From the sequence record MN794232.1: a stretch of 64,000 bases of DNA; one strand, 5' to 3'. Under the pieces are notes generated by a model that ran no database searches, was not told where the DNA came from, and saw only the letters and a program-made list of their open reading frames with translations. Both the position numbers and the translations under genes were made by a program. Shown in pieces: positions 44,490 to 61,172 of this stretch (the stretch's first letter is position 1; the number at the start of each line of letters is the position of its first letter).

Positions 44490-45929
44490 TTAAAAGCTGT
44501 AGCGATCAACGCCTACAGTTTTCAGCATGATCTTGACTGGCTCAAGCTCACCACCTAACAATGAAGTCAGGATAGATGGGCTACAACCCGATACCAGTGC
44601 AGTACCCGCTTCGCCAGCTTTAACCGGAACGTTGCCAAGACGACCACGAATGTTCCAGAAGACTAGTTGTGGCATTTCATAGCCAGCACGTGCGTACATA
44701 GCTTTGATTGCGTCGAAGTTTGCACGTTCGCCGCGACCGTACCAACCACCACCAGTATTTGCTTGGTCGAATTCCATGTCGCTCATGATAAGCAACTTAG
44801 TTGGCATTTCTTCTTGTGAAAGATTTGCACGTTTTGCACGCTCTAACAGAACGTTGAAGCACTTACCGATGTTTGTGCTCATGTCTTCACCTGAGCGATT
44901 CATGTTGTCAAGACGCTCTTTTAGTGAGCTACCGCGCAACTGGTGGAAGTGCGGATCGCTTGAGAACGAAATGAACTGATCTTTGAAGATTCCTTCATTG
45001 CGTTCAGCAACATAGATGCCAAGAGACATTGCAACTTGCTTACAAGTCACGCCAGAACGATCTGTACCTGCGTTGATTGGCGTGCTCATAGAGCCAGATA
45101 CGTCAACAACAGGGATGATGCGCTCATCAGAGCCTTCCATGTAGTTCGGCAGAGCTTTCCATTGCTCGTTCGCTACAGACGCATTGCCATGACTAACGCT
45201 CTTAACGACATCATATGGGAACAATGCACCAGCGTTGATCTTCGCTTCACCTTTTTGAAGTGACTCGATGTAGCTTGTGTAACGAGCAGAAGCGTTACGA
45301 CCGAATGCTTGTTGATAACGAGCAGACGCTACAGATGGCAACTTACCAAAGTCGATTGCATCCCATTCTTGCGCACACATCTTCTGTTCAACAGTGTCAG
45401 ACAAAAGTGCTAGAATCTTACGCCACTGCTTCGCAGTTACACCAAGAGACTTGATTGTGCGCTTGAACACATGACCGTTTTTGCTGTTTTCACGTGGGAA
45501 CCACTTAGCAGCAAGACTATTCTTGTCGTTTACAATCGCGTTTGACCACAATGTGATCGCGTCTTTCTCAAGTCTTGTACCGAACGCAGAAATCAAGTCG
45601 TCGAAACGACCTAGTTCTGGAATTTTCGACATTACAGCACGAGCTACGTCAGGCTGCTCATTACAAAGCTTAGTGAATAGAGTACGGAAAGTACCACGTT
45701 CACCCGCACCACCGCGAACATCACGAGACCACAAAAGAATGCGTGTCGCTAGTTCTGGGTTTTCTGCAAACGCACGACCGAACAGTGTTTTAGACTGATC
45801 GTTGCCACGCATAGCAGCAATACCGAAGAACAAGTTTAGACACTCGTTACCTGAAGTGCTGTGAGTAACTGCACCGTTTGCTGTACGTGAATCGTTTGAT
45901 TGCATAGCGTTCATAAATAGACTAGTCAT
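44490..45929 (-). CDS. TROVE-like DUF2828 / vWA protein (Ro60-related architecture)
   Basis: TANGA...SG..CLNLFF, RDVRGGAGER, AAKWFPR, MIDAS DVSGSM, MSTN, SDMEFD, VFWN; start set by GGAG SD. Confidence 0.8.
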   Translation of the reverse strand: MTSLFMNAMQSNDSRTANGAVTHSTSGNECLNLFFGIAAMRGNDQSKTLFGRAFAENPELATRILLWSRDVRGGAGERGTFRTLFTKLCNEQPDVARAVMSKIPELGRFDDLISAFGTRLEKDAITLWSNAIVNDKNSLAAKWFPRENSKNGHVFKRTIKSLGVTAKQWRKILALLSDTVEQKMCAQEWDAIDFGKLPSVASARYQQAFGRNASARYTSYIESLQKGEAKINAGALFPYDVVKSVSHGNASVANEQWKALPNYMEGSDERIIPVVDVSGSMSTPINAGTDRSGVTCKQVAMSLGIYVAERNEGIFKDQFISFSSDPHFHQLRGSSLKERLDNMNRSGEDMSTNIGKCFNVLLERAKRANLSQEEMPTKLLIMSDMEFDQANTGGGWYGRGERANFDAIKAMYARAGYEMPQLVFWNIRGRLGNVPVKAGEAGTALVSGCSPSILTSLLGGELEPVKIMLKTVGVDRYSF

Positions 45930-45962
45930 TGCTGTAAGCTCCATTATCAAGGATCAAAAAAT

Positions 45963-46565
45963 ATGTTTCACATTGTATATCAAATCACAAACTTAATAAA
46001 CAATAAAATTTACGTCGGTAAACATTCAACAGAGAACATCTACGACGATTACATGGGCTCGGGTAAATTGTTAACCAGAGCCATTTCAAAGTACGGTAAA
46101 GAAAATTTCATCAAAGAGATATTATTCGTTTCACATGATGAGACTGAAGCATATCACAAAGAGTCTGAAATTGTCAACGAAAACTTTGTTTTGCGTCAAG
46201 ACACATACAATTTAAAAATCGGTGGTCTTGGTGGATCATCAGGAATCGAATCACCATGTAAAGGTCGTGCGTTGAGTGAAGATACTAAACGAAAAATGAG
46301 AAAAAGTAAACAATTTTCTCAAAATCATTTAGATTATCTGTCAGATAAGTTAACATCATACAACAAATCTCGCACAGGACAATCAAGAGACGACCTTAAA
46401 GGGTGTTCGAACCCGATGCATAAAGGAATGTGGGTTACACCCGCAGGTAAATTTGAATCGTCCAGCGAAGCTGCATTGGTGAACAATTGCAGTCAATCAA
46501 CTGTAGTTCGACGCTGCAAAAACCCAAATTTCGACGATTGGTTTATCGAAAATTCATCCGAGTGA
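45963..46565 (+). mobile_element. GIY-YIG (Seg-like) homing endonuclease
   Basis: IVYQITNLINNKIYVGKH...YMGSG...YNLKIGG; antisense to neighbours; CATAAATA at 45912. Confidence 0.9.
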
Positions 46566-46857
46566 GATTCGTACCGTTTTCGTAAATCTCAACGAGAACA
46601 CGACCGCCCGTTTCGTAAGACGTGCGAAGAGAACGATAACCATGTTCTTCAAAGAATGCACGAATAATCGACGCGCCACGCTTGTCTTTATCAGCAGCGT
46701 GAATAGGCACTTTCACGATGATAGGGAAAGTAGAACCCGACTCAACGGCGTGCATGAATTCTTTATCACATTCGCTCGTGTAATGCTCGGTAAGAATTCG
46801 TTTTTCTTCTGCTTCACGAGCGTGAATTTGTTGTTTGAGTTCATTATGATTAATCAT
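46543..46857 (-). CDS. hypothetical protein
   Basis: ORF in minus-strand operon. Confidence 0.6.
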   Translation of the reverse strand: MINHNELKQQIHAREAEEKRILTEHYTSECDKEFMHAVESGSTFPIIVKVPIHAADKDKRGASIIRAFFEEHGYRSLRTSYETGGRVLVEIYENGTNLTRMNFR

Positions 46858-47189
46858 TGAAACCCCGCTTGTTTGTTTTCTCGAATTGTCAATTTGACAA
46901 AAGAATATGAGTAATCTCTCATATCACGCGGATCGCCAGAGTAATGTCCGAACTGTGCGTCGAAGTTATGAAAACCCTCGCGTCGCATGACGCCTTTGAT
47001 GAGAGACATCATTTCATCACAACATTCATTGCGGTCAACATTCACCTGAATCGTGATTGGAAACTGAAACCCAGCAACGCCACCGATTTTGCGCTCGATT
47101 GCTTTGCGCATTTCAACTACGAAGAGTTCTTCACGAGTTGAGCGATTCTGTTTGACTTTTTGAATTAATGTATCGTATAAATTACCCAT
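46854..47189 (-). CDS. hypothetical protein
   Basis: start MGNLY; loosely similar to downstream ORF (FP-I-x-x-x-V). Confidence 0.6.
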   Translation of the reverse strand: MGNLYDTLIQKVKQNRSTREELFVVEMRKAIERKIGGVAGFQFPITIQVNVDRNECCDEMMSLIKGVMRREGFHNFDAQFGHYSGDPRDMRDYSYSFVKLTIRENKQAGFQ

Positions 47190-47556
47190 CAATATATTCC
47201 TTAATCGGCTTAGAAAAGTGACGAATACAAGAACTGTCAAGACGCTTGCGACCATCACCGTCTATATCTGGTAGCGTGTAATCGTCATTGAATGGCTGAC
47301 CGCTTTCTTTCGCAATCTCATAGGCATCGGCTCGATTGAAGTATTCACCACAATAGTTGATAAACCCTTGACCGCGATCACCAAGTTCGCTTCGATGTTC
47401 ATACGTGCAGCCAAGCTCTTTCAATAGCTTGAAGACTGATTGCATGTTTCGACCGAAATGACAGCTATCGGCAACAACAATGTCGCGCACTTCACCGTTC
47501 GGTAGTGTTACTCGAATTGCATTAGCAGCAGACGATATTACATTGACGTGCGACAT
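47182..47556 (-). CDS. hypothetical protein
   Basis: RH...QGFIN..GEYFNR..AY.IA motif common in phage proteins. Confidence 0.65.
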   Translation of the reverse strand: MSHVNVISSAANAIRVTLPNGEVRDIVVADSCHFGRNMQSVFKLLKELGCTYEHRSELGDRGQGFINYCGEYFNRADAYEIAKESGQPFNDDYTLPDIDGDGRKRLDSSCIRHFSKPIKEYIDG

Positions 47557-47897
47557 GTATCGTACCTCATAAAAATTGAACCAACGCGCTTATACTGACC
47601 AGAGTGAGAAAGCAACAGAGCCATTTTACTATGACCAACGGGATTACTTGTCACTAGAACAACAGTGCGCGGAAAATTACGATGATCAATCGCATGAGAG
47701 AGAATATCGTATCCCTCTCTACCAACATCATCACCTAGATCGTTGTCCATGAATAGCGTGATGTCAGTTAGATTTGTGTGCTTGACGAAATTCATACCGT
47801 CTTCGAATGTTCGAAGCACGAGTTTTTCACCATCACGTACGTAATCAGACGTGAACTTATCAATATCACGCAGATCATCAATCATAACATAAAACAT
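47538..47897 (-). CDS. cyclic-phosphate-processing receiver-like domain protein
   Basis: IDDLR, DNDLG, GYD, TSNPVG motifs. Confidence 0.7.
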   Translation of the reverse strand: MFYVMIDDLRDIDKFTSDYVRDGEKLVLRTFEDGMNFVKHTNLTDITLFMDNDLGDDVGREGYDILSHAIDHRNFPRTVVLVTSNPVGHSKMALLLSHSGQYKRVGSIFMRYDTCRTSM

Positions 47898-47934
47898 ATA
47901 AATACTCTTGTTATCATCAAACAGGACGGTCTAC

Positions 47935-48480
47935 ATGAACTATTTGAAAATTTATGACAGTATAGTGAAACGAGCACAAAAACGCAAGACAATTTCAGGG
48001 TATTTTGAAAGCCATCACATTTTACCGAGGTGTATGGGAGGCAATAACAAAAAATCAAACATCGTTAGATTGACCGCAAAGGAGCACTACATTTCACACT
48101 TATTGTTAGCTAAGATTCACAACACTCGCGGTTTATGGTTAGCCGTCGCATCAATGAGGGGATGCAATGGCGGAGGTGTGAGATTTACAGGATCTATGTA
48201 CGAAACTGCAAAACGAAAAATTTCCGAAAGTATCCGAGGTGAGAATAACCCGAATTACGGTGGTCTCAGAGAAGAAACAAAACAAAAACTTTCAATCAAA
48301 GCCACTGGCAGAAAACACTCACAAGAGACTAAAGATGCTATGAGCAAAAATCGTCGAGGTGAGAATAACGGCATGTACGGAAAGAAACAACCTACCGAAA
48401 CATGCATTCACTGTGGAAAGATTGCGTCGAAATCAAACATCAAACGCTGGCACAATGATAACTGCAAGTTAAATACATGA
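47935..48480 (+). mobile_element. HNH (Mob-like) homing endonuclease with NUMOD3-like repeats
   Basis: ESHHILPRCMGG...NIVRLTAKEHYISH; exact TATAAATA at 47897-47904; antisense. Confidence 0.9.
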
Positions 48481-48506
48481 TACAGTATCAACAAACGGAA
48501 GTCAAC

Positions 48507-48878
48507 ATGAAAGACGAAAAAATTATTTCTTTCGATGAATATCTAAATGAAGGATGGTTTGAGAGGCAATGGTCTCGATACAAAGCAGGGGAAGATGCAC
48601 GCAGCATAAAGAAACTAGCTAAGATGCATACCAAGCTTCTGCACATCGAACAGAAAGCAAAGCAAAACAAATACCGATACGAAGCCGTACGGTTCAACTA
48701 CGAACACATCAAAATGAATGTGCTCGATGCCAAGAAGCTAATTAACAAGCTGCGATACAAGAAAGGGATTAGTCAAGAGCTAGTTCAGGCAATGGATAAA
48801 CTAGACATTGAACTTGATAGACTCAACGACTTTGCCGTTGAGGGATTGCATGAGCTAATGATTCAACATAAGCTATAA
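48507..48878 (+). CDS. hypothetical protein, possible internal head protein
   Basis: IISFDEYLNE N-terminal motif. Confidence 0.6.
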   Translation: MKDEKIISFDEYLNEGWFERQWSRYKAGEDARSIKKLAKMHTKLLHIEQKAKQNKYRYEAVRFNYEHIKMNVLDAKKLINKLRYKKGISQELVQAMDKLDIELDRLNDFAVEGLHELMIQHKL

Positions 48879-48908
48879 AAGAAAAGCCCCGTTTTGGGGC
48901 TTTTTTGT

Positions 48909-49121
48909 TTAATGTGAGTGGCGTAACTTCTTTTCGATCATTCGATCTACAATCGTGGAGTACATAAGATGCTCTTTGTAGTATTTCTCATCAACTCGAT
49001 TGCACTGGAATTGTCGAAAATCTTTGCGTAAGCGGGCAATGAATTTATTAAGTGCTTTGCGCACTTTGCAAACTTCAGACAGTTCCATGCTTTTTAGTGT
49101 ATCTTCAGAAAGTATTTCCAT
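48909..49121 (-). CDS. hypothetical protein
   Basis: GAGG RBS. Confidence 0.6.
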   Translation of the reverse strand: MEILSEDTLKSMELSEVCKVRKALNKFIARLRKDFRQFQCNRVDEKYYKEHLMYSTIVDRMIEKKLRHSH

Positions 49122-49150
49122 GATTGTTCACCTCTTAGTTAATAGAATAC

Positions 49151-49195
49151 GGGAGACACGGGAATCGAACCCATTGCCTTGACCACATATCTCCC
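49151..49195 (-). pseudogene. tRNA minihelix remnant (acceptor + T arm only)
   Basis: GGGAGAT/GTCTCCC stem, ATGGG-TTCGATT-CCCGT; no CCA. Confidence 0.6.
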
Positions 49196-49219
49196 ACTGA
49201 GAGTTACGCCAATCTGATT

Positions 49220-49444
49220 TTAATGTGCTAGACTCATCAAACGGCGCATACGTTCGCGTTCTGAAAGCTCATCCAAATTATCTACTTTCACCTCTTTGAC
49301 TTCTTCTTTCGGCTCTTCTGGCTCATCTTTTTTACGAGCATCAGGACCGATGTTTTTCCAAAGTGGACTATTGCGCCAGTTGTCGTTGAAACCATTGCCT
49401 AGACCACGACCTTCGCGTGCGTGCGATTTGTTATGAATGCTCAT
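49220..49444 (-). CDS. hypothetical protein
   Basis: coupled ORF. Confidence 0.6.
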   Translation of the reverse strand: MSIHNKSHAREGRGLGNGFNDNWRNSPLWKNIGPDARKKDEPEEPKEEVKEVKVDNLDELSERERMRRLMSLAH

Positions 49445-49647
49445 TATTCGTTTGATTTCTTTGTTACTTGTCTTGCAATACCTACAGCAGCAGCACCAGC
49501 AGCTACTTTAGCACCTGTCTTTGCCGCTTTACCGGCTTTCTTTGCACCAGATTTGACTCGATCTTTGATAGAACGTTTCTTTTTCTTATCTTCTGGTCGA
49601 GATTCTTCAATTTCTGACATGAATTTGTCAAAGGTCTTTTCACTCAT
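49444..49647 (-). CDS. small basic protein, possible internal head protein
   Basis: MSEKTFDKFMSE; K/A-rich. Confidence 0.65.
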   Translation of the reverse strand: MSEKTFDKFMSEIEESRPEDKKKKRSIKDRVKSGAKKAGKAAKTGAKVAAGAAAVGIARQVTKKSNE

Positions 49648-49754
49648 GACTCTTATCTCCAGTTAGTTGAGTTCATCTGTATTTAGAAGATATTTCACAT
49701 CATTCACTCTATGATGATAAATACATAAAGTAAACAATAAAAGAGAATCGAAAA

Positions 49755-50093
49755 ATGGCATTCACTAAGATCGAACTCCCCGCAAAGAGAAGCAGAAGAA
49801 GCATTTATATACCTGCGGGTCAGTACTATGCAGATCTAGACATGACACACCCACAACAACGAGACGGTAATTATTTTTCAGTTCTTGCAACGTTTGGGGA
49901 TGTGCAGATTGCATTCGGCGGGAGATGGTATGACAAGAAAAATCCACAAGACCCCGATGACCCGTTGCCTTCATTCCCTGAAGATTTCATTTTAGTTTCG
50001 TATAATGGACATTATGAAGCACAAGGCAATTTATTCAACACGAGCACTAGAATTTGGTTTAGTTCGATTTCTGGCTGCACACTACTATATTAA
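49755..50093 (+). CDS. hypothetical late protein
   Basis: GATAAATA upstream. Confidence 0.65.
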   Translation: MAFTKIELPAKRSRRSIYIPAGQYYADLDMTHPQQRDGNYFSVLATFGDVQIAFGGRWYDKKNPQDPDDPLPSFPEDFILVSYNGHYEAQGNLFNTSTRIWFSSISGCTLLY

Positions 50094-50102
50094 GGACACA
50101 AA

Positions 50103-51818
50103 ATGAGTTCTATCAATTTACCTGGCGGAGGACAACCTCTACCAAAATACGTAGAAGAAGCGCCTGCAAATGGGTTGCTATATGGACGTAAAGATGAGAC
50201 ATGGGAGCCGATTCCTGAAGACTCACTAACGCCGTTTCCATTAGGTGCGACCCCTAATTCATTCGATGCAAGAACCGGCGACAGAGACGCAGCAATCGCT
50301 CTAAGAGACGCTCATGCATCAGAAAACCCGTCGTGGGTTGCGTTTTATGTAAACAACCCGACATCGGCGATTGACCTTGTATATGAAGACATTTCGGTTG
50401 GCGGAACCGTTGCTGAAAGACAAACGTATACAGGAACACAATGGATTTCACAGCGTATTGTTGAAGGCATACCAGGTCCGATTGGGCCATCAGGTGAAGG
50501 GTCAATTCCCCCATTCGCGTCGATTGCCGAGCGAGATTCATTCTTCGCGTCATCGGGGAATAAATCACTATTGAAAAAAGGTTTGCCTGTATTCGTTCAA
50601 GAATTTGAAGGTCGAGCAAGCTCATATTATTGGAGAGGCGAGACAAACCCAAATACGTACGATGCTTCTAAGTTCTCACTAGCCGCAGTTCAATCAGGGA
50701 ACGGTGATTTATACTTAGCAAATACGCATAGAATATCTTCGTCAGGACAGAATATAGCAGTAACTAATATCATCGACAACGTGAGCTTTCACCCCGTATG
50801 GCAGACATATGAAGAAGGGAATACTGCAACGGTACGTGTGCGTTCTATCGAGTCTGTCAATGAATACTCAGATAAATCAGCACAGATAACTAACCCAAGA
50901 TGGGAACTAATGCAGATGCCAAACAACAGAACGTTATACTCAGTTGTAGTTGATTTTGTCAATGCATACGCTGAAATTGATGTTGTCGTTTATAAAAACA
51001 CAGATGAATATTATCAAACTAAAATATTCGATATTACACCAGGAGAAGTTGATGTATTAATCGAGCCACCGTTTGACATTCGTTCAATGGACACACTTGA
51101 GATTGAGTTGCGCAACCCGAACTTAGATGTTGTAGTATGGGGTAACTTATCAACAGGCATCCCATGGAATAAACCAACAACACGTGATTTTACCGACGAG
51201 ACGGTTGTAATTCAATCTGATTTAGATGCAGTCGAAACAAGAGTAAGTGACATCGAAGCAAACGCGATTGTCATCGGGGATAATGTTTCTAAGCTGACAA
51301 ATGACGCGGGATATATTAGCGACAAAGACATCATTTTCCAGAAGAGCAATAATACAGGAACTAATGTGTTAACGCTAAACGGGGCAGGTGATGAGGGTAC
51401 TATCCCACTATCACAAACCGATGAAAACGGTGTGTTATTCGAATACTCGTCAACTACTGGCAATTTCAGACCGCTTGAAGATAAACCAATGCACATTAAA
51501 CTTAGAATAAGTATTGATCGTTCTGGGGGTGGGTCAAATCCTGAGATTATAACGTGGGTTGAATCAGCAGCGACAGACACGACAGTTCCTAATGCTTTCA
51601 CACAAGAAACATCGGCATTTCGCATGGATGACCTGCAAACCGACCGTACATTATTTTTAATTGATACGATTTTAAATATGAACTCAAGTCGTTATTATCG
51701 CATAAGACTTCGTAATTTAAACGGCGATAATTTTGATGTTGATACATTCGGCCCGTTTGCAACAAGTTCGGGTAATGATATTTTTGCACCCGCAGTTGAG
51801 TTTATGATTAGTAGATAA
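50103..51818 (+). CDS. fibre-like virion protein with N-terminal foldon-like motif
   Basis: YVEEAPANGLLYGRKDETW; GIPGPIGPSG; coiled coil; VSKLTNDAGY. Confidence 0.7.
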   Translation: MSSINLPGGGQPLPKYVEEAPANGLLYGRKDETWEPIPEDSLTPFPLGATPNSFDARTGDRDAAIALRDAHASENPSWVAFYVNNPTSAIDLVYEDISVGGTVAERQTYTGTQWISQRIVEGIPGPIGPSGEGSIPPFASIAERDSFFASSGNKSLLKKGLPVFVQEFEGRASSYYWRGETNPNTYDASKFSLAAVQSGNGDLYLANTHRISSSGQNIAVTNIIDNVSFHPVWQTYEEGNTATVRVRSIESVNEYSDKSAQITNPRWELMQMPNNRTLYSVVVDFVNAYAEIDVVVYKNTDEYYQTKIFDITPGEVDVLIEPPFDIRSMDTLEIELRNPNLDVVVWGNLSTGIPWNKPTTRDFTDETVVIQSDLDAVETRVSDIEANAIVIGDNVSKLTNDAGYISDKDIIFQKSNNTGTNVLTLNGAGDEGTIPLSQTDENGVLFEYSSTTGNFRPLEDKPMHIKLRISIDRSGGGSNPEIITWVESAATDTTVPNAFTQETSAFRMDDLQTDRTLFLIDTILNMNSSRYYRIRLRNLNGDNFDVDTFGPFATSSGNDIFAPAVEFMISR

Positions 51819-52149
51819 AAGAGCCTTTCGGCTCTTTTAATTTGCAGAAACAAAAAAACCTGCTCAAGGCAGGTTTAGATGTGCAATACACAGACATTCG
51901 AGAATTGTTTTATCGTCTTTCCTTAAATCTCAATTGACTATCTCGATGTTTCTCATCAAGAGAATACCCATGATTCGGCATGAGACCTATTTCGTTTTAC
52001 AGTACGAACACCGTCTTAATGGTCATTTCCTACCACGAGAATGCGACAGGCTCACGTCATCACTGAGAAAGCAGCTAGTGCGCCTCATTACTATTAAAGT
52101 TTGCTTCTTTGATTAGTAATAGTTGCTGTACAATGTCTTATTGCGAATT

Positions 52150-54155: not shown

Positions 54156-54475
54156 GCACACGGGCTGACACCATATATTTATGGTCTGAGCGAGGAACCA
54201 CATAGTGGGTACTGTCACCTCATCTTAGTTTTGATTGTTTTACATGACGATAACTAGAAACGTTCATAATAATGCCACGCGATACTTCCTGTATCACGGC
54301 TAACTGAGTTAGCAAACTTGCCTTGCGGCTGTAGTGTCGTTTCCGACGAATTAAGTACAGACAATACCGAAGTGTTTTTTCGTCTTTTGCATTAATCGGA
54401 GTTGACTAGCTTATTGATTCTCAACAAGCAAATATCGTCTGTTTCAGCGACGCGCCTATCTGACTATTTCTAGGC
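54156..54475 (-). ncRNA. candidate large structured ncRNA (about 320 nt)
   Basis: no ORF; at least 8 hairpins incl. C(UUCG)G, GAAA and GCAA tetraloops. Confidence 0.6.
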
Positions 54476-54576
54476 AGAGAGAATCTTTCCTTTCAAGCTG
54501 CGCCGAAGCACTACCCAGGTTAAGATCATCACTTCTTTTAAGTAATTTTCAATTGTTTGCTGTATATTGTCTCTCT
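54476..54576 (-). ncRNA. CAGCAA-module RNA G
   Basis: AGAGAGA/TCTCTCT closing stem, ATACAGCAAACAAT. Confidence 0.6.
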
Positions 54577-54634
54577 AATCATACTCATGATATGCCGAAG
54601 CAAAGTATCATTCGCCGCATGATAGAGCTTAATT

Positions 54635-54710: not shown

Positions 54711-54786
54711 ATTAAAAGAATTCGATCCATGAGCTATTGCGCAGACGATGGTAGTAAAGAGACTCTGCACTCATGTGATCGAAATT

Positions 54787-54861
54787 TGGTGGACACGCAG
54801 GGAGTCGAACCCTATCCTCCTCATTGCAAGTGAGGCGCTTTCCCAATTAAGCTAACGGCCC
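54787..54861 (-). tRNA. tRNA-Ala(TGC), imperfect acceptor stem
   Basis: G3-U70 present; stem pairs only with a bulge. Confidence 0.75.
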
Positions 54862-54871
54862 AATGTTCGTT

Positions 54872-55081
54872 TTACAACTGTGTGATTGAGATATGATCCC
54901 ATCCGTATAAACCTTCAAGTTCTTCAATAGGCTCACAAACAATGTCAGAAATATATTCAGCAACTTTTGCTTCAATTTCTTCATCAGATAGCTTTTCATC
55001 AATTGCAAAAGCATCTTCATTATTGTTGCCACCGAAATAGCCGCCAATGTCATATTCACACCATACTGAAATATAGTTCAT
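54872..55081 (-). CDS. hypothetical acidic protein
   Basis: GAGAATAACATG; MNYISVWCEYD. Confidence 0.65.
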   Translation of the reverse strand: MNYISVWCEYDIGGYFGGNNNEDAFAIDEKLSDEEIEAKVAEYISDIVCEPIEELEGLYGWDHISITQL

Positions 55082-55105
55082 GTTATTCTCACAGTTGTTT
55101 GAAAA

Positions 55106-55181
55106 TGGTGCCCTGACACGGATTTGAACCGCGAACCTGCTCATTACAAGTGAGCTGCACTGCCAGTTGTGCTATCAGGGC
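55106..55181 (-). tRNA. tRNA-Thr(TGT)
   Basis: cloverleaf, CCA. Confidence 0.93.
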
Positions 55182-55187
55182 GTTACT

Positions 55188-55300
55188 GAGTGTTATTACT
55201 TGCGTCGTCCAGACCAGAGATACCAACTCTGAAAGGGAATCGAACCCCAAACATTTCTTTTCGTAAGAAGAATATTAGTAATTGTTTGCTGAAAACACTC
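55188..55300 (-). ncRNA. circularly permuted tRNA mimic (YrlA-like) RNA F
   Basis: terminal stem, CAGCAAACA bulge, inner stem, variable-like hairpin, T arm, capped acceptor hairpin, D-like hairpin. Confidence 0.75.
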
Positions 55301-55309
55301 TTCGGTATT

Positions 55310-55383
55310 TGGCAGGGGATAACGGATTCGAACCGGTACTGCGTGAGTCAAAGTCACGTATGCTGCCTTTACATCAATCCCCT
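55310..55383 (-). tRNA. tRNA-Gln(TTG)
   Basis: cloverleaf, CCA. Confidence 0.92.
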
Positions 55384-55402
55384 ATTATTCTTAAATTATC
55401 TT

Positions 55403-55478
55403 TGGCGGAACCGACGGGGCTTGAACCCGCTTCCTTTCCCGTGACAGGGGAATATGCACCCAGTTACACCTCGGCTCC
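55403..55478 (-). tRNA. tRNA-Asp(GTC)
   Basis: cloverleaf, CCA. Confidence 0.93.
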
Positions 55479-55550
55479 CCAAAGACAACTTAAAGTAGTT
55501 GCTTTGTTTTTTTTTCAAGTTCACACTTAACGGCAGTGACTCTCCGAATT

Positions 55551-55626
55551 TGGCGGACCGCCCGAGACTCGAACTCGGAACTCCTCGCTTAACAGGCGAG
55601 CACTCTAACCATTGAGTTAGCGATCC
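55551..55626 (-). tRNA. tRNA-Asn(GTT)
   Basis: cloverleaf, CCA. Confidence 0.93.
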
Positions 55627-56000
55627 ATATTCTTTTGTAATGCGTGTTCTTCACGATGGCAGTTAGAACAAAGCATAATGCACTTATCTAACTCAGTTTC
55701 GATTCTCGACCATGATATAGTCTGACTAGAGATACCGAAATCTTTCTCGTTTGGATCAAGATGATGAAACTCTAATGCTTCAATGCATCTATCATACCCG
55801 CATCGTTCACAACAACCACCTTTATATTCAACGGCTCTTAGTTTAGCACGCTTTCTATAAGAAATGACTGCTTCTTTATTCTTTCGTTTTCGTTCAGCAT
55901 CAGTGTGCTTTCGTCGATTCTTACCGTTGTATAAACCAGCACATCGACGACTACAGAATTTATTAAGTGCGTCTGCACCACACTCTAAGCATTTATTCAT
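55617..56000 (-). mobile_element. HNH endonuclease in tRNA cluster
   Basis: CLEC..CSRRC; CERCG...LEFHHLDP...LCSNCHREEH. Confidence 0.85.
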
Positions 56001-56144
56001 TTTTTGAGTTACCTATTTAAGTTTAAAAGATAACTCAGTGATAAAGTGTTTAGGCGCCACATTCGTAAGTGAATGACTCTATTACTACTTAGCAATTACA
56101 TTCAAGCGTTACCAAGAATCATGCCACGTAGCTTTAAATTAAAC

Positions 56145-56202
56145 AGCAATCCTTTTCTCTTTTTGCAAATAAAAGTTTTGTATTGTTTGCTGAAAGATTG
56201 CT
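56145..56202 (-). ncRNA. minimal CAGCAA-module RNA H
   Basis: AGCAATC/GATTGCT stem, TTTCAGCAAACAAT. Confidence 0.55.
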
Positions 56203-56208
56203 TAATTC

Positions 56209-56282
56209 TGGCAGGGACATAGAGATTCGAACTCTAACGAACGGGTTTGGAATCCGCCATGCTGCCGTTACATCATGTCCCT
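56209..56282 (-). tRNA. tRNA-Trp(CCA)
   Basis: cloverleaf, CCA. Confidence 0.9.
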
Positions 56283-56288
56283 AAAATT

Positions 56289-56362
56289 TGGTAGCCCCAG
56301 ACAGACTCGAACTGTCAACGTGCGATTATCGGTCGCGTGTTTTACCGTTAAACTATGGAGCT
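56289..56362 (-). tRNA. tRNA-Ile(GAT), C at position 33
   Basis: loop CCGATAA. Confidence 0.85.
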
Positions 56363-56426
56363 AAAGTGAGCACATTTCAGTGCTCGTGTTAATCGGTTAA
56401 GTGACTAAACTTCCCGGTTAACTAAT

Positions 56427-56525
56427 TGGCGGAAGACTAGGGATTCGAACCCTAACATCACCTCCCGGTGACCGACGGTTTTCAAGACCGTTGCCGCTAC
56501 CCAGAATCTTTCGGCTAAGCCTTCC
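56427..56525 (-). tRNA. tRNA-Ser(TGA), enlarged D loop
   Basis: 99 nt, long variable arm, CCA. Confidence 0.88.
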
Positions 56526-56532
56526 ATTAATT

Positions 56533-56608
56533 TGGTAGCGAGTGCCAGAATCGAACTGACCTAAACTAGCTTATGAGACTAGTGAGTTCACCAGAACTCT
56601 AACTCGCA
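56533..56608 (-). tRNA. tRNA-Met(CAT), initiator-like
   Basis: 1:72 mismatch and A11-U24; lacks the three G-C anticodon-stem pairs. Confidence 0.75.
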
Positions 56609-56710
56609 ATTATTCAACAGCTTGCGTTCTTTGGTCTGTTTATCGCTGTCTGAACTGAGTTCGCCGAGCGATCAATAGATTAAGTTGAATTGCAGTATGC
56701 AAGCTAAATT

Positions 56711-56796
56711 TGGTGGAGCGTAGAGGAATCGAACCTCTCTTCCCATTACGGGACACGGATTTACAGTCCGCTGCCGCACCTTGCGGCTTACGCTCC
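56711..56796 (-). tRNA. tRNA-Tyr(GTA)
   Basis: cloverleaf, variable arm, CCA. Confidence 0.93.
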
Positions 56797-56802
56797 AGAA
56801 TT

Positions 56803-56876
56803 TGGTACTCGATACGGGAGTCGAACCCGTCCTACTTCCTTGAAAGGGAAGTGACCTACCGATAGTCGAATCGAGC
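56803..56876 (-). tRNA. tRNA-Glu(TTC)
   Basis: cloverleaf, CCA. Confidence 0.92.
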
Positions 56877-56939
56877 ATTAAATTGTATATTGATTTGCAA
56901 GCTAATCAACTCGCAAAGCGATACACAATGTATCTAATT

Positions 56940-57016
56940 TGGTACGCCGCCCTGGACTCGAACCAGACACCTGAGAGTTAAAAGCTCCCTGCTCTTCCAT
57001 GATGAGCTACCGACGC
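56940..57016 (-). tRNA. tRNA-Lys(TTT)
   Basis: cloverleaf, CCA. Confidence 0.92.
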
Positions 57017-57027
57017 ATTATAAAATC

Positions 57028-57102
57028 TGGTGGGTCGCAAGAGATTCGAACTCTCACCGTTCTGGTTAAAAGCCAGATGTACTACCGTTATACGAACGAC
57101 CC
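57028..57102 (-). tRNA. tRNA-Lys(TTT), second copy
   Basis: cloverleaf, CCA. Confidence 0.92.
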
Positions 57103-57108
57103 AGAATG

Positions 57109-57183
57109 TGGTGCACCCCCTCGGAATCGAACCGAGCACTGCGGGACTTCAATCCGTCGCTTTTCCTGATAAGCTAAGGGTGC
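57109..57183 (-). tRNA. tRNA-Phe(GAA), distorted anticodon arm
   Basis: GGA-TTGAAG-TCC gives a 6-nt loop, or a mismatched stem with a 7-nt loop. Confidence 0.65.
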
Positions 57184-57184
57184 A

Positions 57185-57262
57185 TGGTACGCAAGAAGAG
57201 ATTCGAACTCTTAACTTCTGGTTTCTAAGACCAGTGCCTCTGCCAGATTGGGCTACTTGCGC
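57185..57262 (-). tRNA. tRNA-Leu(TAG), short variable loop
   Basis: CTGGT-CTTAGAA-ACCAG; CCA. Confidence 0.88.
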
Positions 57263-57297
57263 ATTGTTTGTTTTTGAACGTTACTTCGTTCTTCTTC

Positions 57298-57418
57298 ATT
57301 GTACATGATGTTTATATCGTTGTAAACATCTTTTTTGAAAAACTTTTCATTAACTTTTGAATGATATTTCGCTTTTCTCTATTGTACATGATGTTTATAT
57401 CGTTGTAAACATCTTTTT
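57298..57418 (-). repeat. exact 38-bp direct repeat = tandem promoters
   Basis: 57298-57335 and 57381-57418; TTTACA-17-TACAAT with 8-bp inverted repeat. Confidence 0.85.
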
Positions 57419-57574
57419 AAATTTATTTTGAAGAACTTAACGTTTTCATTTTTCTATGTGTTAATCTTAACACTCGCTCAAGACATCTTAAACACTAATT
57501 TGTGAAAAAGTTCGTTAAATTCTATCATCACGACAGTACTTAACGAGATACGGTCCTAAGCGTATCAAATTAAT

Positions 57575-57700
57575 TCAGAATGGTGAGACTTGAACTCACT
57601 TCGAGTAATAGCGTAAACTAACAGTTGTTGCCAGAGGCTATCAATTATTCTCTACCGAGTATGTTGCAACTCTGCATTTCCCCATTTCTAGGCATTCTGA
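57575..57700 (-). ncRNA. tRNA-like RNA E (acceptor + T arm, expanded core, no CCA)
   Basis: TCAGAATG/CATTCTGA; GTGAG-TTCAAGT-CTCAC. Confidence 0.6.
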
Positions 57701-57704
57701 AATA

Positions 57705-57780
57705 TGGCACCCCACAGAAGATTCGAACTTCTAACCTGCGCCTTCGTAGGACGCTGCTCTTCCAATTGAGCTAGTAGGGC
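57705..57780 (-). tRNA. tRNA-Arg(ACG)
   Basis: cloverleaf, CCA. Confidence 0.93.
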
Positions 57781-57787
57781 ATTAAAC

Positions 57788-57864
57788 TGGTCCGTGACAA
57801 GCGATTCGAACGCTTAACTTCTCCGCCCCAAACGGAGTACTCTACCAGATTGAGCTAGTCACGG
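57788..57864 (-). tRNA. tRNA-Pro(TGG)
   Basis: cloverleaf, CCA. Confidence 0.93.
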
Positions 57865-57873
57865 ATTTTAAAT

Positions 57874-57947
57874 TGGTCGGGACGAAGAGACTCGAACTCT
57901 TACCACATGCTCCCAAAGCATGAACGCTACCTTTACGCCACGTCCCG
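57874..57947 (-). tRNA. tRNA-Pro(TGG), second copy
   Basis: cloverleaf, CCA. Confidence 0.92.
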
Positions 57948-58079
57948 TTTGTTCTTTAACTTTGTTTATCATACTCTGCTTTCAAAGTACGTTAAACAAA
58001 ATTTTTGATTTTCTTTCGCCCATAAAAAAGGACGCTACGTGCGTCCTCAAGTATACTTCTATGTTATACTATTGGACTA

Positions 58080-58206
58080 CGTTTGTGGAGACCACTCTTG
58101 TTTCGCACACGGATTCGCTAGATACACAAATTCTGAGCGCAGAAAATCGCTGCGTAAAATCATATCAGAATGTGTATTCGAATGTGTCATGGAAACTCTC
58201 TAAACG
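58080..58206 (-). ncRNA. candidate rod-shaped ncRNA
   Basis: nested stems CGTTT/AAACG, ATACACA/TGTGTAT, TTCTGA/TCAGAA, CGCAG/CTGCG; downstream terminator at about 58025-58049. Confidence 0.5.
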
Positions 58207-58315
58207 TTAAAATAAAAATGTTTTTGTTTGTATAATAGTACTTATAACACCAAATTTGACGATTTGCGGTATTTTCGCAGAAAATTGAAAAAAAAATCAA
58301 CTTTCTGCGATTTTC

Positions 58316-58561
58316 TTATCGACCTAGGTGTTTTCGCTTGTTCATTTCAACGAGGATTTCATCGTTGTAATGACGGTTCAGTTCAACATACTTCTTGTGC
58401 TGATCTGAAGTCAACTCGTTGGTGTCATTCAGATGTTTCAAGAATCCAAGAGGTTTGCGAAACGACTTGCGATATTCGTTCAGACGCTCGTCCGTTAGAT
58501 TATGCAGTTGTTTCGGAGTCAGTAACGTTTTATTGATGTCAAAACTCATGTTGTACCTCAC
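58316..58561 (-). CDS. hypothetical protein
   Basis: GAGG RBS before MSFD. Confidence 0.6.
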   Translation of the reverse strand: MRYNMSFDINKTLLTPKQLHNLTDERLNEYRKSFRKPLGFLKHLNDTNELTSDQHKKYVELNRHYNDEILVEMNKRKHLGR

Positions 58562-58574
58562 TTGTTATTAAAAT

Positions 58575-58690
58575 TGGTAGTCGGGGCTGGATTCGAACCA
58601 GCGACCACGTGCTTAACAGGCAATTGAAGGAGTGCTGGAGCGATACTTGACAGTATCATTCTTCGTGCTCTACCACTGAGCTACCCGACT
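58575..58690 (-). ncRNA. tRNA-Asn-like RNA A with 41-nt insertion in anticodon stem
   Basis: removing the insert gives a perfect 75-nt tRNA-Asn(GTT) with CCA. Confidence 0.85.
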
Positions 58691-58695
58691 ATGAA

Positions 58696-59217
58696 TTATT
58701 TAACTTTGAACTTCAAATTACGCCAGTCAAAGTTTCGTTTGTTCTTTGTGTTGTAGAACGTGCCCCAATCAATAGCAATCGGACAGTTCTTACTACCTAC
58801 ACGAGCGATAAAGACATCGTGAGTCTCGCTGTAACGCTCTCTAAGCTCTTTTAAACGCTTATCGTAGTTAGCGATATACTCTGCACACGCTTTGTTGTAA
58901 GCTGCTTTAGAGAAGCGTTCGTCACTCGAAAATACATTACCCAGATAAGGTCGAATAACACGAACTCGTTCTTTAGACCAACCCATACTAAAGCTGTTTT
59001 CAATCTCACCTGAGATTTCACCAGTCTTCTTACATCTAGCAAGAATGACCCAGCAACGTTCACGCCGAAAATCTTTTCGTACGTACACGTTAACGTGCTT
59101 GTCAATGTACTCTTGATAACGAGCGTTATACTCAGCACGCAGTTTATTGCGCACTTCAGGCGACATTGCAGCCCGTTCTTCTTTCGAAAACGCTTGTGCG
59201 AATTTCAATGGTTTCAT
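58696..59217 (-). CDS. hypothetical basic protein
   Basis: GAGGA RBS, start MKPL. Confidence 0.65.
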   Translation of the reverse strand: MKPLKFAQAFSKEERAAMSPEVRNKLRAEYNARYQEYIDKHVNVYVRKDFRRERCWVILARCKKTGEISGEIENSFSMGWSKERVRVIRPYLGNVFSSDERFSKAAYNKACAEYIANYDKRLKELRERYSETHDVFIARVGSKNCPIAIDWGTFYNTKNKRNFDWRNLKFKVK

Positions 59218-59230
59218 TATAATTTCCTCT

Positions 59231-59470
59231 TGGCGCCGCTCGTGTGAATCGAACACACGTCAAACACAACACCTCGTCCACCCAATTAGAGTTTCGAAGT
59301 AAGAGCTAATCAGCATTTCGGAGCAGTCGAGCGTTATTTCTACGAGTGAGCTTTCGACAACTCACACGCACTTTCTACCCGGTCCCAGTGATTCGGTACC
59401 AACGCAGGTTGCGAACCTACGTCTGCACTAATGCTGGGAAAACACTGCGTATTGTACACCAGTTAGCGGC
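59231..59470 (-). ncRNA. 240-nt RNA I with tRNA-like ends and CCA
   Basis: GCCGCT/AGCGGC-G-CCA; GTGTG-TTCGATT-CACAC. Confidence 0.75.
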
Positions 59471-59472
59471 AT

Positions 59473-59703
59473 TTAAAGATAGCTATCAAAGACAGCATCA
59501 TCAACTTCTTCAATATTGATGTCAGCGTAACACTCATTCGCAATTGCTTGAATTTCATCTATTGAAACTGTACCTGCGTACAATACAACAGCGTCGTTCG
59601 GAATCACGACATCACACATGTATTTGTTAAACATTGCAGTTCTGAAATCAGAATCAACAGAGTAACCGTGCATTGATGTGATAACTAGCAATTTATGTGA
59701 CAT
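59473..59703 (-). CDS. hypothetical protein
   Basis: GAGGA RBS; upstream TTGACA promoter. Confidence 0.65.
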   Translation of the reverse strand: MSHKLLVITSMHGYSVDSDFRTAMFNKYMCDVVIPNDAVVLYAGTVSIDEIQAIANECYADINIEEVDDAVFDSYL

Positions 59704-59782
59704 AATGTTTTCCTCGTGTAGTTGATAATGTGTATACTACACGTTGATGAAACGCCTGTCAACAACTTTTTCAAATTATTTT

Positions 59783-59859
59783 TGGTAGCCCCTCTCGGAT
59801 TCGAACCGAGAACCTGACGATTATGAGTCGTCTGCTACTACCGTTACAGCTAAGGGGCT
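59783..59859 (-). tRNA. tRNA-Ile2-like (CAT)
   Basis: AGCCCCT acceptor and GACTCATAATCG arm resemble enterobacterial Ile2. Confidence 0.8.
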
Positions 59860-60226
59860 ATCGTTCTAGAAATCTACCGACTTTAGCAGCGAAGATGTTT
59901 GCTTCTTCTGCAATCAAAGCAGTTGATTTCATTTGATGAAAAGCGTCTTGTTGATGCAGAACATCTAGTTTACCAGCGCATTTCATCAGTTCTTTTACTG
60001 ATTGCATAATCTCAATGTTATCAAGCTGACTCGTGTCAGGGTGATGATTGAGACTATCCAAGACAGGGAGTACTTGTTGATAGTAACCCATGCCGATGAA
60101 GTTTATCATAAGTCTGTACTGCATTTCAACAGCAAATGTACAATATTTTCGAAGATTGCGTTTTACAATCTCACAGCGATGTAAGATACAATCAAGTTCG
60201 TCATTTATGTCATCAAACTTATTCAT
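59858..60226 (-). CDS. hypothetical protein
   Basis: GAGG RBS, start MNKFDD. Confidence 0.6.
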   Translation of the reverse strand: MNKFDDINDELDCILHRCEIVKRNLRKYCTFAVEMQYRLMINFIGMGYYQQVLPVLDSLNHHPDTSQLDNIEIMQSVKELMKCAGKLDVLHQQDAFHQMKSTALIAEEANIFAAKVGRFLER

Positions 60227-60240
60227 AAAACCTCGAAAAT

Positions 60241-60360
60241 TGGTGGAGAGTGATGGATTTGAACCACCGACCAAAAGATTTACCAGTTAAGGTTTGCAGC
60301 ATGAATGCTTGTCAGTATTCTTTAACATTCTTTTGCTCTACCAGACTGAGCTAACTCTCC
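60241..60360 (-). ncRNA. tRNA-like RNA B with 50-nt structured anticodon loop
   Basis: canonical acceptor, D and T arms and CCA; AAAGA/TCTTT stem encloses module. Confidence 0.85.
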
Positions 60361-60365
60361 ATTGT

Positions 60366-60476
60366 ATTACTACTTTGTTTCGCTTGTCAGGGCGTCGAAA
60401 CGCTACCTAACCAAGGATTCGAACCTTTTAACCAACACCTCGCGAAAATTATTTTTCTCGTTGGCAAAGTAGTAAT
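60366..60476 (-). ncRNA. second permuted tRNA mimic RNA J
   Basis: 12-bp terminal stem, hairpin, AAGG-TTCGAAT-CCTT T arm, UUCG-capped hairpin. Confidence 0.6.
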
Positions 60477-60487
60477 GTAAAAACATA

Positions 60488-60613
60488 TAGTTGCGGGTGC
60501 AGGATTCGAACCTACATCACGATCTTATGAATGATATGCGAAATTGATTGCCGTACAGATTCTTATCAGAATCAGTTTTGTGCTACGTGTGCTACCACTT
60601 ACACCAACCCGCA
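60488..60613 (-). ncRNA. tRNA-like RNA C with module insertion
   Basis: D and T arms canonical; 15-bp terminal stem 60484-60621; ends ACTA, not CCA. Confidence 0.8.
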
Positions 60614-60882
60614 ACTATATGCTTTCGGGATGCTTACGCAGGTTCTTCTCTACGTAAGCACAGTTCCTCAATGTATATTTTGCCTTAGCCAATCACAACA
60701 CAACCCAACCCAATATCGTGCGCTTTAATTACGGGATTGATGACCCGTTCGCATGTGATTAGCGTAAAAGTATGATTACGCACCTTTTCTTCTTCAATGT
60801 CCAAGGCAAAGAGGACTATGAATACTAGTGCGAGAAGATATACAATCAAATTGCTCACCTCGCTTAATAAGTGAGAGTACAT

Positions 60883-61005
60883 TGGTCGAGTGTAACGGAA
60901 TCGAACCGTTCCCACGATCTCCCTATGATATGCGTAAATTGGTTGCTGAATATAATCATGTCTGATTACAGTATGCTACGTGTGCTGCCACTACACCAAC
61001 ACTCG
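60883..61005 (-). ncRNA. tRNA-like RNA D with module insertion
   Basis: paralog of C; CCA present; 21-bp perfect inverted repeat 60873-60893/60999-61019. Confidence 0.82.
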
Positions 61006-61020
61006 ACCAATGTACTCTCG

Positions 61021-61172
61021 ATATTTTAAATGTGCGCTACTTGCACGCCGACTGAGCGAATTTTAACTCAGCTAGTTTTTGATTGAGACCTCGTCCGCTA
61101 AGACTATTCCCTGCACGCCAGAACTTATACTGGCTCTATGTATTCATTGCGGCTAACGCACATTTAAAATAT
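61021..61172 (-). ncRNA. candidate 152-nt structured RNA
   Basis: 16-bp perfect closing stem, internal GCCAG/CTGGC and CTGAG/CTCAG hairpins; strand inferred from cluster. Confidence 0.55.

Follow-up and report, generated by a model that had tools for sequence, protein, structure and literature searches.

We analysed a stretch of 64,000 nucleotides from sequence record MN794232.1 (called the window below), which comes from a KVP40-like, T4-type Vibrio phage; its positions 57900-61300 match Vibrio phage VH1_2019 at 100% identity and KVP40 at 98.8%. An earlier note, made from the letters of this DNA, had proposed that it encodes a phage version of the Ro60/Y RNA system. The window carries the gene of a Ro60-like ring protein and at least nine RNAs with one recognition module in common (Table 1), and we think it likely that they belong together as a ribonucleoprotein (RNP) family of the Ro60/Y RNA kind, in which the variable parts of the RNAs would be adaptors or decoys. 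Four sets of observations carry this reading: the Ro60 fold found for a model of the protein, the anatomy of the RNAs, the covariation of their helices, and the co-occurrence of gene and RNAs in the genomes of distant phages. The RNAs lie in and around a tRNA cluster. ARAGORN called 27 tRNAs on the minus strand, between 52150 and 59859, and Rfam added three tRNA-type matches (54790-54861, 58578-58690 and 60244-60360), the last two of them abnormally long. These two long matches are elements A and B of our catalogue and are annotated as tRNA-Pseudo-3 and tRNA-Pseudo-4 in the KVP40 record, but they are conserved structured RNAs rather than pseudogenes.

Common to all nine elements is a helix strand followed by WWA-C(N)GCAA. 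The helix has 6-7 bp, with conserved end pairs A-U and G-C, and an unpaired G follows its 3' strand; after the 5' strand comes the bulged WWA-CAGCAA, which leads into a second helix. Seven of the elements (A-D and F-H) had been listed in the earlier note with their CAGCAA-like segments, and all seven were found on the minus strand, the coordinates given there being the 3' (low-coordinate) ends. The number of elements had to be raised to at least nine by the addition of J and I. The description of the segment as a one-sided bulge above a second stem stood only in part: 3 nt lie opposite the bulge in A and 1 nt in B, and the second stem of C and D is uncertain. None of A-D has the 7-nt loop and 5-bp anticodon stem of a tRNA; A and B pass Rfam only by way of an insertion, C and D fail, and ARAGORN calls none of the four as tRNA. 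The bare CAGCAA hexamer shows no enrichment, with 31 minus-strand and 30 plus-strand copies in the window, whereas the structured motif, as scored by the covariance model described below, is enriched.

The module occurs in two forms. In the open form (F, G, H, I and J) the helix joins the RNA's own ends, 5' AAG ... CUG(U) 3', and it is a terminal helix of 7 bp in F, G and H. Among 30 open RNAs collected from other phages, the first two pairs are A-U in 25 and G-C in 29, the 5' end reads (A)AG in 25-29, and the nucleotide after the 3' strand is G in all 30, a feature for which these RNAs had not been selected. The open RNAs have an A-rich 3' portion before the terminal helix and a variable interior. 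In F, four hairpins come after the bulge, the second of them T-arm-like, the third D-arm-like and the last small; this order is permuted with respect to tRNA and resembles that of YrlA. In the capped form, found in A-D and their relatives, the helix is a hairpin closed by C-G with a loop of the form U-G-N-N-A-A (UGUCAA, UGACAA, UGAUAA, UGAAAA, UGGUAA, UGGAAA and UGUUAA). The capping loop with its closing pair thus reads CUG, two nucleotides, AAG, that is, the joined termini of the open form, indicating that A-D are circular permutations of it. A permuted relationship between A-D and F-H had been suggested in the earlier note, and the identity of the conserved capping loop with the joined conserved termini bears it out. 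A double T-loop, in which the capping loop UGNNAA and the bulge would bind tRNA elbows, was also considered and was dropped, the loop being explained by the joined AAG/CUG termini.

We compared the tRNA clusters of phages QD01, F86, K566, 1.081.O, ValKK3 and D479, which are 72-90% identical. The orthologues keep every helix by means of compensatory changes. The module hairpin of D appears as GUAAUC/GAUUAU, GCAAGU/GCUUGU, GCUUAC/GUAAGU and GCAAGC/GCUUGU; in the C/D group, double changes were found in 25 of the 49 predicted pairs (RNAalifold, eleven sequences); the terminal stem of H varies together with its partner strand (AGCAAUC, AGUAAUC, GGAUAC); the terminal stem, T-arm-like hairpin and D-arm-like hairpin of F all covary; and compensatory changes are seen among the orthologues of A and B as well. 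Three more members (M1-M3) are present in D479, in different tRNA-like bodies, and the slot of B in QD01 holds a different tRNA body with the same module, indicating that the module moves between scaffolds. Folding of the seven first elements as single sequences was not decisive (z from -0.5 to -3.5), and the minimum-energy folds missed the shared module; comparative data were therefore used instead. An exact pattern of the C/D type (GCACACGTAGC...CNGCAAYC) retrieved 29 stretches from IMG/VR, of which only those of KVP40 and VH7D were real and the rest were chance matches in coding DNA. The C/D sequence block is therefore clade-specific.

The position of the capped module in the anticodon arm raises the question of whether A-D are merely decayed or intron-bearing tRNA genes, the insert being junk or a short intron whose splicing would yield, for example, tRNA-Asn from A. 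In A, 41 nt break the anticodon stem CGUGC/GCACG after its second pair (between CG and UGC, after nt 28) and leave the Asn-like hairpin UGC-CUGUUAA-GCA as a side arm, and removal of these 41 nt restores a perfect anticodon arm, CGUGC-CUGUUAA-GCACG. Annotation points the same way: KVP40 has tRNA-Pseudo-3, -4 and -5, and the 1.081.O record calls the orthologue of B tRNA-Asn. However, the inserts are kept, with covariation, in phages of as little as 72% identity, and the same module is found in different tRNA bodies (the B slot of QD01, M1-M3 of D479) and in free RNAs. C and D have no CCA, have terminal helices of 16-21 bp, and keep residual 'anticodon' loops that are not conserved. The D479 orthologue of A retains the Asn-like hairpin with the compensatory pair AGC/GCU, yet its position 33 is C. 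Features of the bulge-helix-bulge or group I type were not seen, and no Rfam intron family matched. Taken together, these data make decayed or spliced tRNAs a highly improbable explanation. A relation to the rnaC and rnaD RNAs of T4 was considered too. These are likewise stable RNAs of unknown function among phage tRNAs, but they are without the CAGCAA module; the idea that A-D are their homologues was rejected, no shared module being visible and the covariance model giving no match.

The product of the Ro60-like gene matches Pfam DUF2828 and DUF7788 and falls in PHROG 850, 'RNA-binding protein'. Sequence searches of the PDB were uninformative, so that a comparison of folds was needed. An AlphaFold2 model built from a 40-sequence alignment (pLDDT 78, pTM 0.74) has about 260 residues of helical repeats and, after them, an alpha/beta domain. 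When this model was compared with the PDB by Foldseek, the top 11 matches were all Ro60 structures (Thermus phage phiLo, Xenopus and human), with E-values from 7e-9 to 1e-6 and TM-scores of 0.51-0.60. The alignments were full length (500-575 columns), and the next matches were isolated vWA domains. The metal-ion-dependent adhesion site (MIDAS) signature DxSxS...T...D is invariant in both alignments (D276-V-S278-G-S280, T352, D384). As modelled, then, the protein has the Ro60 fold, a helical-repeat ring plus a vWA domain, but it is not a member of Pfam TROVE. The earlier note had taken this DUF2828/vWA protein to be Ro60-like and TROVE-like, and had named Foldseek as a check; the likeness to Ro60 was confirmed at the level of the fold, and the TROVE label was not borne out by a family match. 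By tblastn the DUF2828 family was found in at least 711 phage records from very different hosts, often under the name 'Ro-like RNA binding protein'. DUF2828 has also been reported in mimivirus-like sequences and is mentioned in several plant studies.

RNAs with a CAGCAA-bulged helix adjoin DUF2828 genes in phages of Actinobacteria, Firmicutes, gamma-proteobacteria and epsilon-proteobacteria. In each of five isolates (Mycobacterium phage LeBron, Felixounavirus wV8, Listeria phage LP-064, Campylobacter phage F336 and Staphylococcus phage BE02), the non-coding DNA beside the gene holds two to four copies of a pattern made of a 6-7 nt helix strand, WWA-CAGCAA-W and, further on, the complementary strand followed by G. 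The five proteins are all of the DUF2828 plus DUF7788 type, none of them TROVE; identity with the window protein is 31% for LeBron gp53 and 46% for wV8 gp47. In LeBron, gp53 is followed by a gap of 360 nt that holds a YrlA-like tRNA mimic (Rfam 39.8 bits, E 4e-6) as well as three copies of CAGCAAU. Every copy comes after a 5' helix strand that has its complement further downstream, and in one case the helix so formed is the terminal stem of the YrlA-like RNA. In wV8 the candidates are not the annotated tRNAs but four RNAs without annotation that lie between them. An Rfam scan of the wV8, LP-064, F336 and BE02 loci gave no family for the motif RNAs. Two further features were seen in LP-064: a ROOL-like RNA (974-1525 of the locus; 87.4 bits in Rfam against a gathering score of 99.1), which precedes the three CAGCAA RNAs and the Ro60-like gene by about 650 nt, and an RtcB-like ligase gene downstream.

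The association was then quantified in 80 IMG/VR loci that encode relatives at 42-54% identity, taken with 3-kb flanks. Counted in bins of 250 nt on the strand of the gene, CAGCAA occurred 41 times in the nearest downstream bin and 32 times in the next, with 17 and 13 for the two nearest upstream bins, against a background of about 5 per farther bin and 1-8 per bin on the opposite strand. At least one copy lies within 600 nt of the gene in 60 of the 80 loci, and a typical locus combines a short RNA of about 60 nt with a long form in which motif and 3' strand are about 200-220 nt apart. A helix partner of at least 7 bp was found for 61 of 102 copies near the gene versus 82 of 335 elsewhere (Fisher p = 1e-10). 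A looser helix search (any CNGCAH core, a 6-bp helix and a 150-nt window) had given too many chance matches, after which the criteria were tightened. In uncultured phage L114 the gene is immediately followed by four RNAs: two open forms, one of them with CUGCAA, a form with a T arm, and a tRNA of 120 nt that carries the capped module (loop UGUCAA, then CAGCAA; Rfam tRNA 49.8 bits). This predicted set is the window's repertoire in miniature, placed beside the gene.

A covariance model, R1, was trained on 30 short RNAs, non-redundant and all taken from phages outside the KVP40-like group. When the whole window and the T4 tRNA region were searched, the six best matches of R1 in 128 kb of searched strand were H, F, G, J, D and I, all on the minus strand and inside the 9-kb tRNA cluster. 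H scored 37.8 bits (E 1.9e-6), the 5' part of F 22.7 (E 0.009), G 21.8 (E 0.014) and J 17.9 (E 0.12); the module of D scored 13.9 and a partial match to I 13.5. At E <1, R1 gave 13 matches, all in the six KVP40-like loci, and nothing was found in 27 unrelated viral contigs (266 kb) or in the T4 tRNA region. The covariance-model check named in the earlier note, carried out with a model trained on other phages, recovered H, F, G and D and added J and I. The note's further claim that the DUF2828 protein and the RNAs belong together agrees with the enrichment on the gene's strand and near the gene in the 80 IMG/VR loci and with the distant isolates. The predicted RNA family is widespread in phages and was undescribed until now.

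Could the bulged helix instead be a processing or stability signal of tRNA operons, such as a host RNase site or a mark for end maturation, with DUF2828 genes merely lying near tRNA clusters? The gene is embedded in tRNA clusters in wV8, F336 and the uncultured loci L114 and L122, all elements of the window lie between tRNAs, and the AAG...CUG termini could be processing sites. Yet the 9.4-kb LeBron locus has three motif RNAs and no tRNA at all. In an Rfam scan of nine DUF2828 loci, six had no tRNA within 3 kb of the gene, and four of these six still have the motif within 600 nt, indicating that the association is with the gene and not with tRNAs. Furthermore, the T4 tRNA cluster is without a match, and the motif is also present in the mRNA leader of a DUF2828 gene. 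We therefore regard a processing signal as unlikely. It may also be asked whether the RNAs act without the Ro60-like protein, as regulators that pair with targets through a CAGCAA seed or as sponges of host proteins, their location reflecting no more than shared expression timing. Many regulatory RNAs have, like these, an A-rich 3' portion and a variable interior, and the look-alike Class I RNAs (see below) are bound by another kind of protein, the RRM protein Rnp1A (PMC7919456). But the hosts range from mycobacteria to Campylobacter, and a target or chaperone that all of them have is not obvious; what stays invariant, a structured helix end with a bulge, is of the kind typically recognized by proteins; and DUF2828 is the only gene common to all loci. 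RNAs independent of the protein are, on this evidence, very unlikely.

Several points weigh against a Ro60/Y-like RNP. Pfam TROVE (PF05731) matched neither the window protein nor five distant homologues, for which only DUF2828 and DUF7788 were found, and sequence and profile searches of the PDB with the window protein returned designed armadillo repeats, with TROVE chains only at E ~1. Confidence in the AlphaFold2 model is moderate at the pLDDT given above, and the root-mean-square deviations in Foldseek are 7-9 Å. The cores of A, B, C and J are variants (CAGCAC, CUGCAA, CGGCAA), and R1 scores D and I weakly. Covariation in the training alignment of R1 is circular, the members having been chosen for their helix, and it was not used as evidence. 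The association was measured by anchoring on the gene, that is, in the direction from gene to RNA only. Finally, the RNAs of the window are on the same strand as the Ro60-like gene but lie 6-15 kb away and are not adjacent to it. Between the gene and the tRNA cluster are two homing-endonuclease-type genes, 45963-46565 (plus strand, GIY-YIG, SegE-like) and 47908-48480 (plus strand, HNH plus NUMOD3), and a cysteine-rich open reading frame (ORF) inside the cluster (55617-56000, minus strand) looks HNH-like by eye. Insertions of the homing type may account for the gap seen here, as compared with the adjacency in most other phages.

Table 1. Elements of the candidate Ro60/Y-like system in the window.
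Feature	Position	Strand	Description
A	58575..58690	-	tRNA body, ACCA encoded; 49.8 bits with the Rfam tRNA model, 54 nt in the anticodon arm being treated as an insertion
A, module core	58630-58657	-	GAUAC-UGUCAA-GUAUC-GCUC-CAGCAC
B	60241..60360	-	tRNA body, ACCA encoded; 55.8 bits with the Rfam tRNA model, 45 nt in the anticodon arm being treated as an insertion
B, module core	60291-60320	-	GAAUAC-UGACAA-GCAUUC-AUG-CUGCAA; module in place of the anticodon loop
C	60479..60625	-	tRNA-like elbow (D and T arms), terminal helix of ~16 bp, without CCA; consensus fold with compensatory changes
C, module core	60546-60573	-	GAUUC-UGAUAA-GAAUC-UGUA-CGGCAA
D	60871..61020	-	paralogue of C; tRNA-like D and T arms, terminal helix of 20-21 bp, without CCA
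D, module core	60941-60969	-	GUAAUC-AGACAU-GAUUAU-AUU-CAGCAA
F	55186..55302	-	open form; terminal helix GAGUGUU/AACACUC, bulge UUU-CAGCAA
G	54475..54577	-	open form; AGAGAGA ... UCUCUCU-G, bulge CAAUAUA-CAGCAA
H	56143..56204	-	minimal open form of ~60 nt; (A)AGCAAUC-UUU-CAGCAA ... AAAAG-GAUUGCU-GU
J (new)	56617..56707	-	AGCUUGC-AUA-CUGCAA ... GCAAGCU-GU; between tRNA-Tyr and tRNA-Met; kept in ValKK3 and QD01
I (new)	51888..52140	-	long open form of ~250 nt at the end of the tRNA cluster; AGACAUU-GUA-CAGCAA ... AAUGUCU-GUGU
Gene of Ro60-fold protein	44490..45929	-	DUF2828 plus DUF7788; helical-repeat N-terminal part and vWA domain
Leader motif	45927..45942	-	GGAGC-UUA-CAGCAA-UG; between Shine-Dalgarno and start codon of the Ro60-like gene; candidate operator

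Bacterial YrlA RNAs are encoded beside Ro60 and carry GNCGAAN0-1G in their terminal stem; their tRNA-like domain begins with the T arm, goes on with an acceptor-like stem-loop and ends with the D arm (Chen et al. 2014, PMC4201824). The TROVE Ro60 of Thermus phage phiLo binds two CGAA-bearing RNAs, Yrl1 and Yrl2, and the host PNPase (Hu et al. 2025, PMC12135203). The system described here resembles these in its protein architecture of a helical-repeat ring plus vWA, in small RNAs encoded beside the gene (true here of the other phages), in a conserved single-stranded motif within a bulged helix made by the RNA ends, and, as seen in LeBron, L093 and wV8, in at least one tRNA-mimic partner RNA per genome with permuted T and D arms (PMC4201824; PMC12135203). 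It differs in that the phage proteins belong to DUF2828/DUF7788 and not to TROVE, the motif is WWA-CAGCAA and not GNCGAAN0-1G or CGAA, the RNAs are many more (at least nine per genome), and a capped, circularly permuted form sits in the anticodon arm of CCA-ended tRNA bodies that are normal in other respects. A kinship with YrlA, for which the earlier note had named a comparison with the Rfam family, was not supported in the window. The YrlA model (RF02553, gathering score 69 bits) matched none of the nine elements and gave 18.9 and 18.8 bits on pairs of ordinary tRNAs only, and GNCGAAN0-1G is missing from all nine. F has the T-arm-like and then the D-like hairpin inside the motif helix, without an acceptor-like hairpin between them, while A-D have the normal tRNA order. 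The adjacency to the Ro60 gene that characterizes YrlA is lacking in the window and present in most other phages. RNAs in YrlA order and closed by the CAGCAA helix adjoin the gene in LeBron, in L093 (39.2 bits) and in wV8. We read the system as a parallel lineage of the Ro60/Y-RNA kind of RNP.

By analogy with Ro60, which binds the bulged stem of Y RNAs, the ring protein would bind the helix end together with the bulged UUACAGCAA. With the capped helix of A-D grafted into the anticodon arm, the ring would sit at the place of the anticodon and leave the elbow and the acceptor end free. The CCA-ended tRNA bodies of A and B, the elbows of C and D on their long helices and the permuted T and D arms of F could then serve as adaptors or decoys; as adaptors, they would connect the ring to tRNA-handling proteins (processing, repair or defence nucleases) during infection. 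Two studies of family members give functional hints. Bas63 gp130, a Felixounavirus Ro60-like gene directly upstream of tRNA genes, counters the Ppl defence in a PhageMaP study, the authors of which already suggested that there may be Y RNAs among the neighbouring tRNA genes (bioRxiv 10.1101/2024.10.10.617714); unlike the present analysis, that study defined no RNA partner or motif. Bas63 gp130 and wV8 gp47 probably belong to one family. Over-expression of LeBron gp53 is toxic to M. smegmatis (PMC13148394). DUF2828 proteins have been labelled 'Ro-like' or 'RNA-binding' without a known RNA, and candidate partner RNAs are now at hand for this large family. The defined module, the AAG/CUG helix end plus the bulge, and the catalogue of RNAs make the system directly testable. 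The capped form, in which a predicted protein-binding module has moved into the anticodon arm of tRNAs, offers a clean case of modular RNA evolution by circular permutation.

A second likeness is to the Class I RNAs of Dictyostelia. These are RNAs of about 60 nt (42-65) that start with AAG and end with CUGU; their terminal stem of 6 bp covaries, an 11-nt motif adjoins the 5' strand of this stem, and the interior is variable (Kjellin et al. 2021, PMC7919456). They have been reported in no organism outside Dictyostelia, and their function is unknown (PMC7919456). The consensus of the Rfam family Dicty_Class_I_RNA (RF01414) is GaUcuC-CUUACAGCAAU-...-AAAA-...-GagAuC-UG. The phage RNAs share with it the length of about 60 nt and a covarying terminal stem of 6-7 bp (H measures 58-62 nt, and its stem covaries among phages), and the same short stem-closed form is found in the 30 RNAs of other phages, though these were chosen for a helix. 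They also share the motif (C)UUACAGCAA directly after the 5' stem strand, H having UUU-CAGCAAA and other phages mostly UUA-CAGCAA-W where Class I has the 11-nt consensus CUUACAGCAAU. The ends are alike too, H reading uAAGCAAUC ... GAUUGCUGU, as are the A-rich 3' part and the variable interior. With the Class I model, H scored 27.5 bits and a stretch of L122 (4428-4490) 36.1 bits (E 0.004), neither reaching the gathering score of 41.5 bits, and the wV8, LP-064, F336 and BE02 loci gave no match at E <1. Unlike the phage RNAs, with their sub-threshold scores, Class I RNAs are products of eukaryotic genes with a DUSE promoter, and Rnp1A is their known direct binder (PMC7919456). We put forward, tentatively and as possible rather than probable, that the phage RNAs and the Class I RNAs form one ancient family with DUF2828/DUF7788 Ro60-like proteins as the common partner. 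The resemblance is the first lead outside Dictyostelia for that RNA family. If the common origin is true, there would be a second, cross-kingdom lineage of Ro/Y-like RNPs, and Class I RNAs, whose function has been unknown since 2004, would have a candidate protein partner and function. Phages would additionally have grafted the module into CCA-ended tRNA bodies, which could carry the ring to the tRNA-handling machinery.

A copy of the motif is present in the leader of the Ro60-like gene itself. It overlaps the start codon in the window, is identical in phage D484 and lies at -30 in 1.081.O; in three uncultured phages (L052, L060 and L083), a mini-hairpin AAGAAUU-nnnn-CAGCAA-...-AAUUCU abuts the Shine-Dalgarno sequence. 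Binding over the start codon would give autoregulation, and the presence of these copies suggests that the Ro60-like gene is controlled in this way; it is the tentative part of the proposal, no helix partner of the leader motif having been found in the window. Directly after the Ro60-like gene is an RNase H-like gene (43914-44468, minus strand, Pfam PF04308). The same pair exists in phage 1.081.O, and the neighbour is not kept in wV8, LP-064, F336, BE02 or LeBron.

Other features were noted in and around the RNA cluster. A promoter-like site lies immediately upstream of B (60390-60361), and an intrinsic terminator follows I (51876-51856). The minus-strand interval between B and C (60361-60478) contains a T-arm-like AAGGUUCGAAUCCUU and a hairpin whose loop includes CUGACAAG, the sequence of the capping loop. 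An extra capped module with the core CUGCAU, absent from the window, was found between C and B in KVP40, QD01 and ValKK3 (positions 10525, 10607 and 10701 of the respective loci), and in KVP40 it is inside tRNA-Pseudo-5. The interval in the window may be the remnant of a lost member of the family. At 54790-54861 (minus strand) is a tRNA-type element that scores 45.7 bits in Rfam and is not called by ARAGORN; its KVP40 orthologue is tRNA-Pseudo-1. About 220 nt of non-coding sequence at 59260-59480 (minus strand) start with GCCGC and end with ...GUGUGUUCGAUUCACAC-GAGCGGCGCCA. The stretch has the look of a large insert framed by an acceptor-like pairing, a T arm and CCA, and may be a tRNA-derived RNA of another kind. 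Only faint tmRNA-type Rfam matches were found near it (59182-59263, 14.8 bits), and KVP40 is unannotated there.

ORFs annotated as 'hypothetical protein' overlap structured RNAs in wV8 (gp48, 4871-5128 of the locus, minus strand), and small ORFs do so in QD01, F86 and K566; judged by this overlap, they are probably false gene calls. For small ORFs of this sort and for 'pseudo-tRNAs', which many tRNA clusters of phages contain, a reading as structured RNAs is now available. A gp57B-type 2H-phosphoesterase / 'RNA ligase' gene (61670-62125, minus strand) lies upstream of the cluster of RNAs and tRNAs; it holds the same place in all KVP40-like phages examined and in T4 and is a possible functional neighbour in RNA repair.

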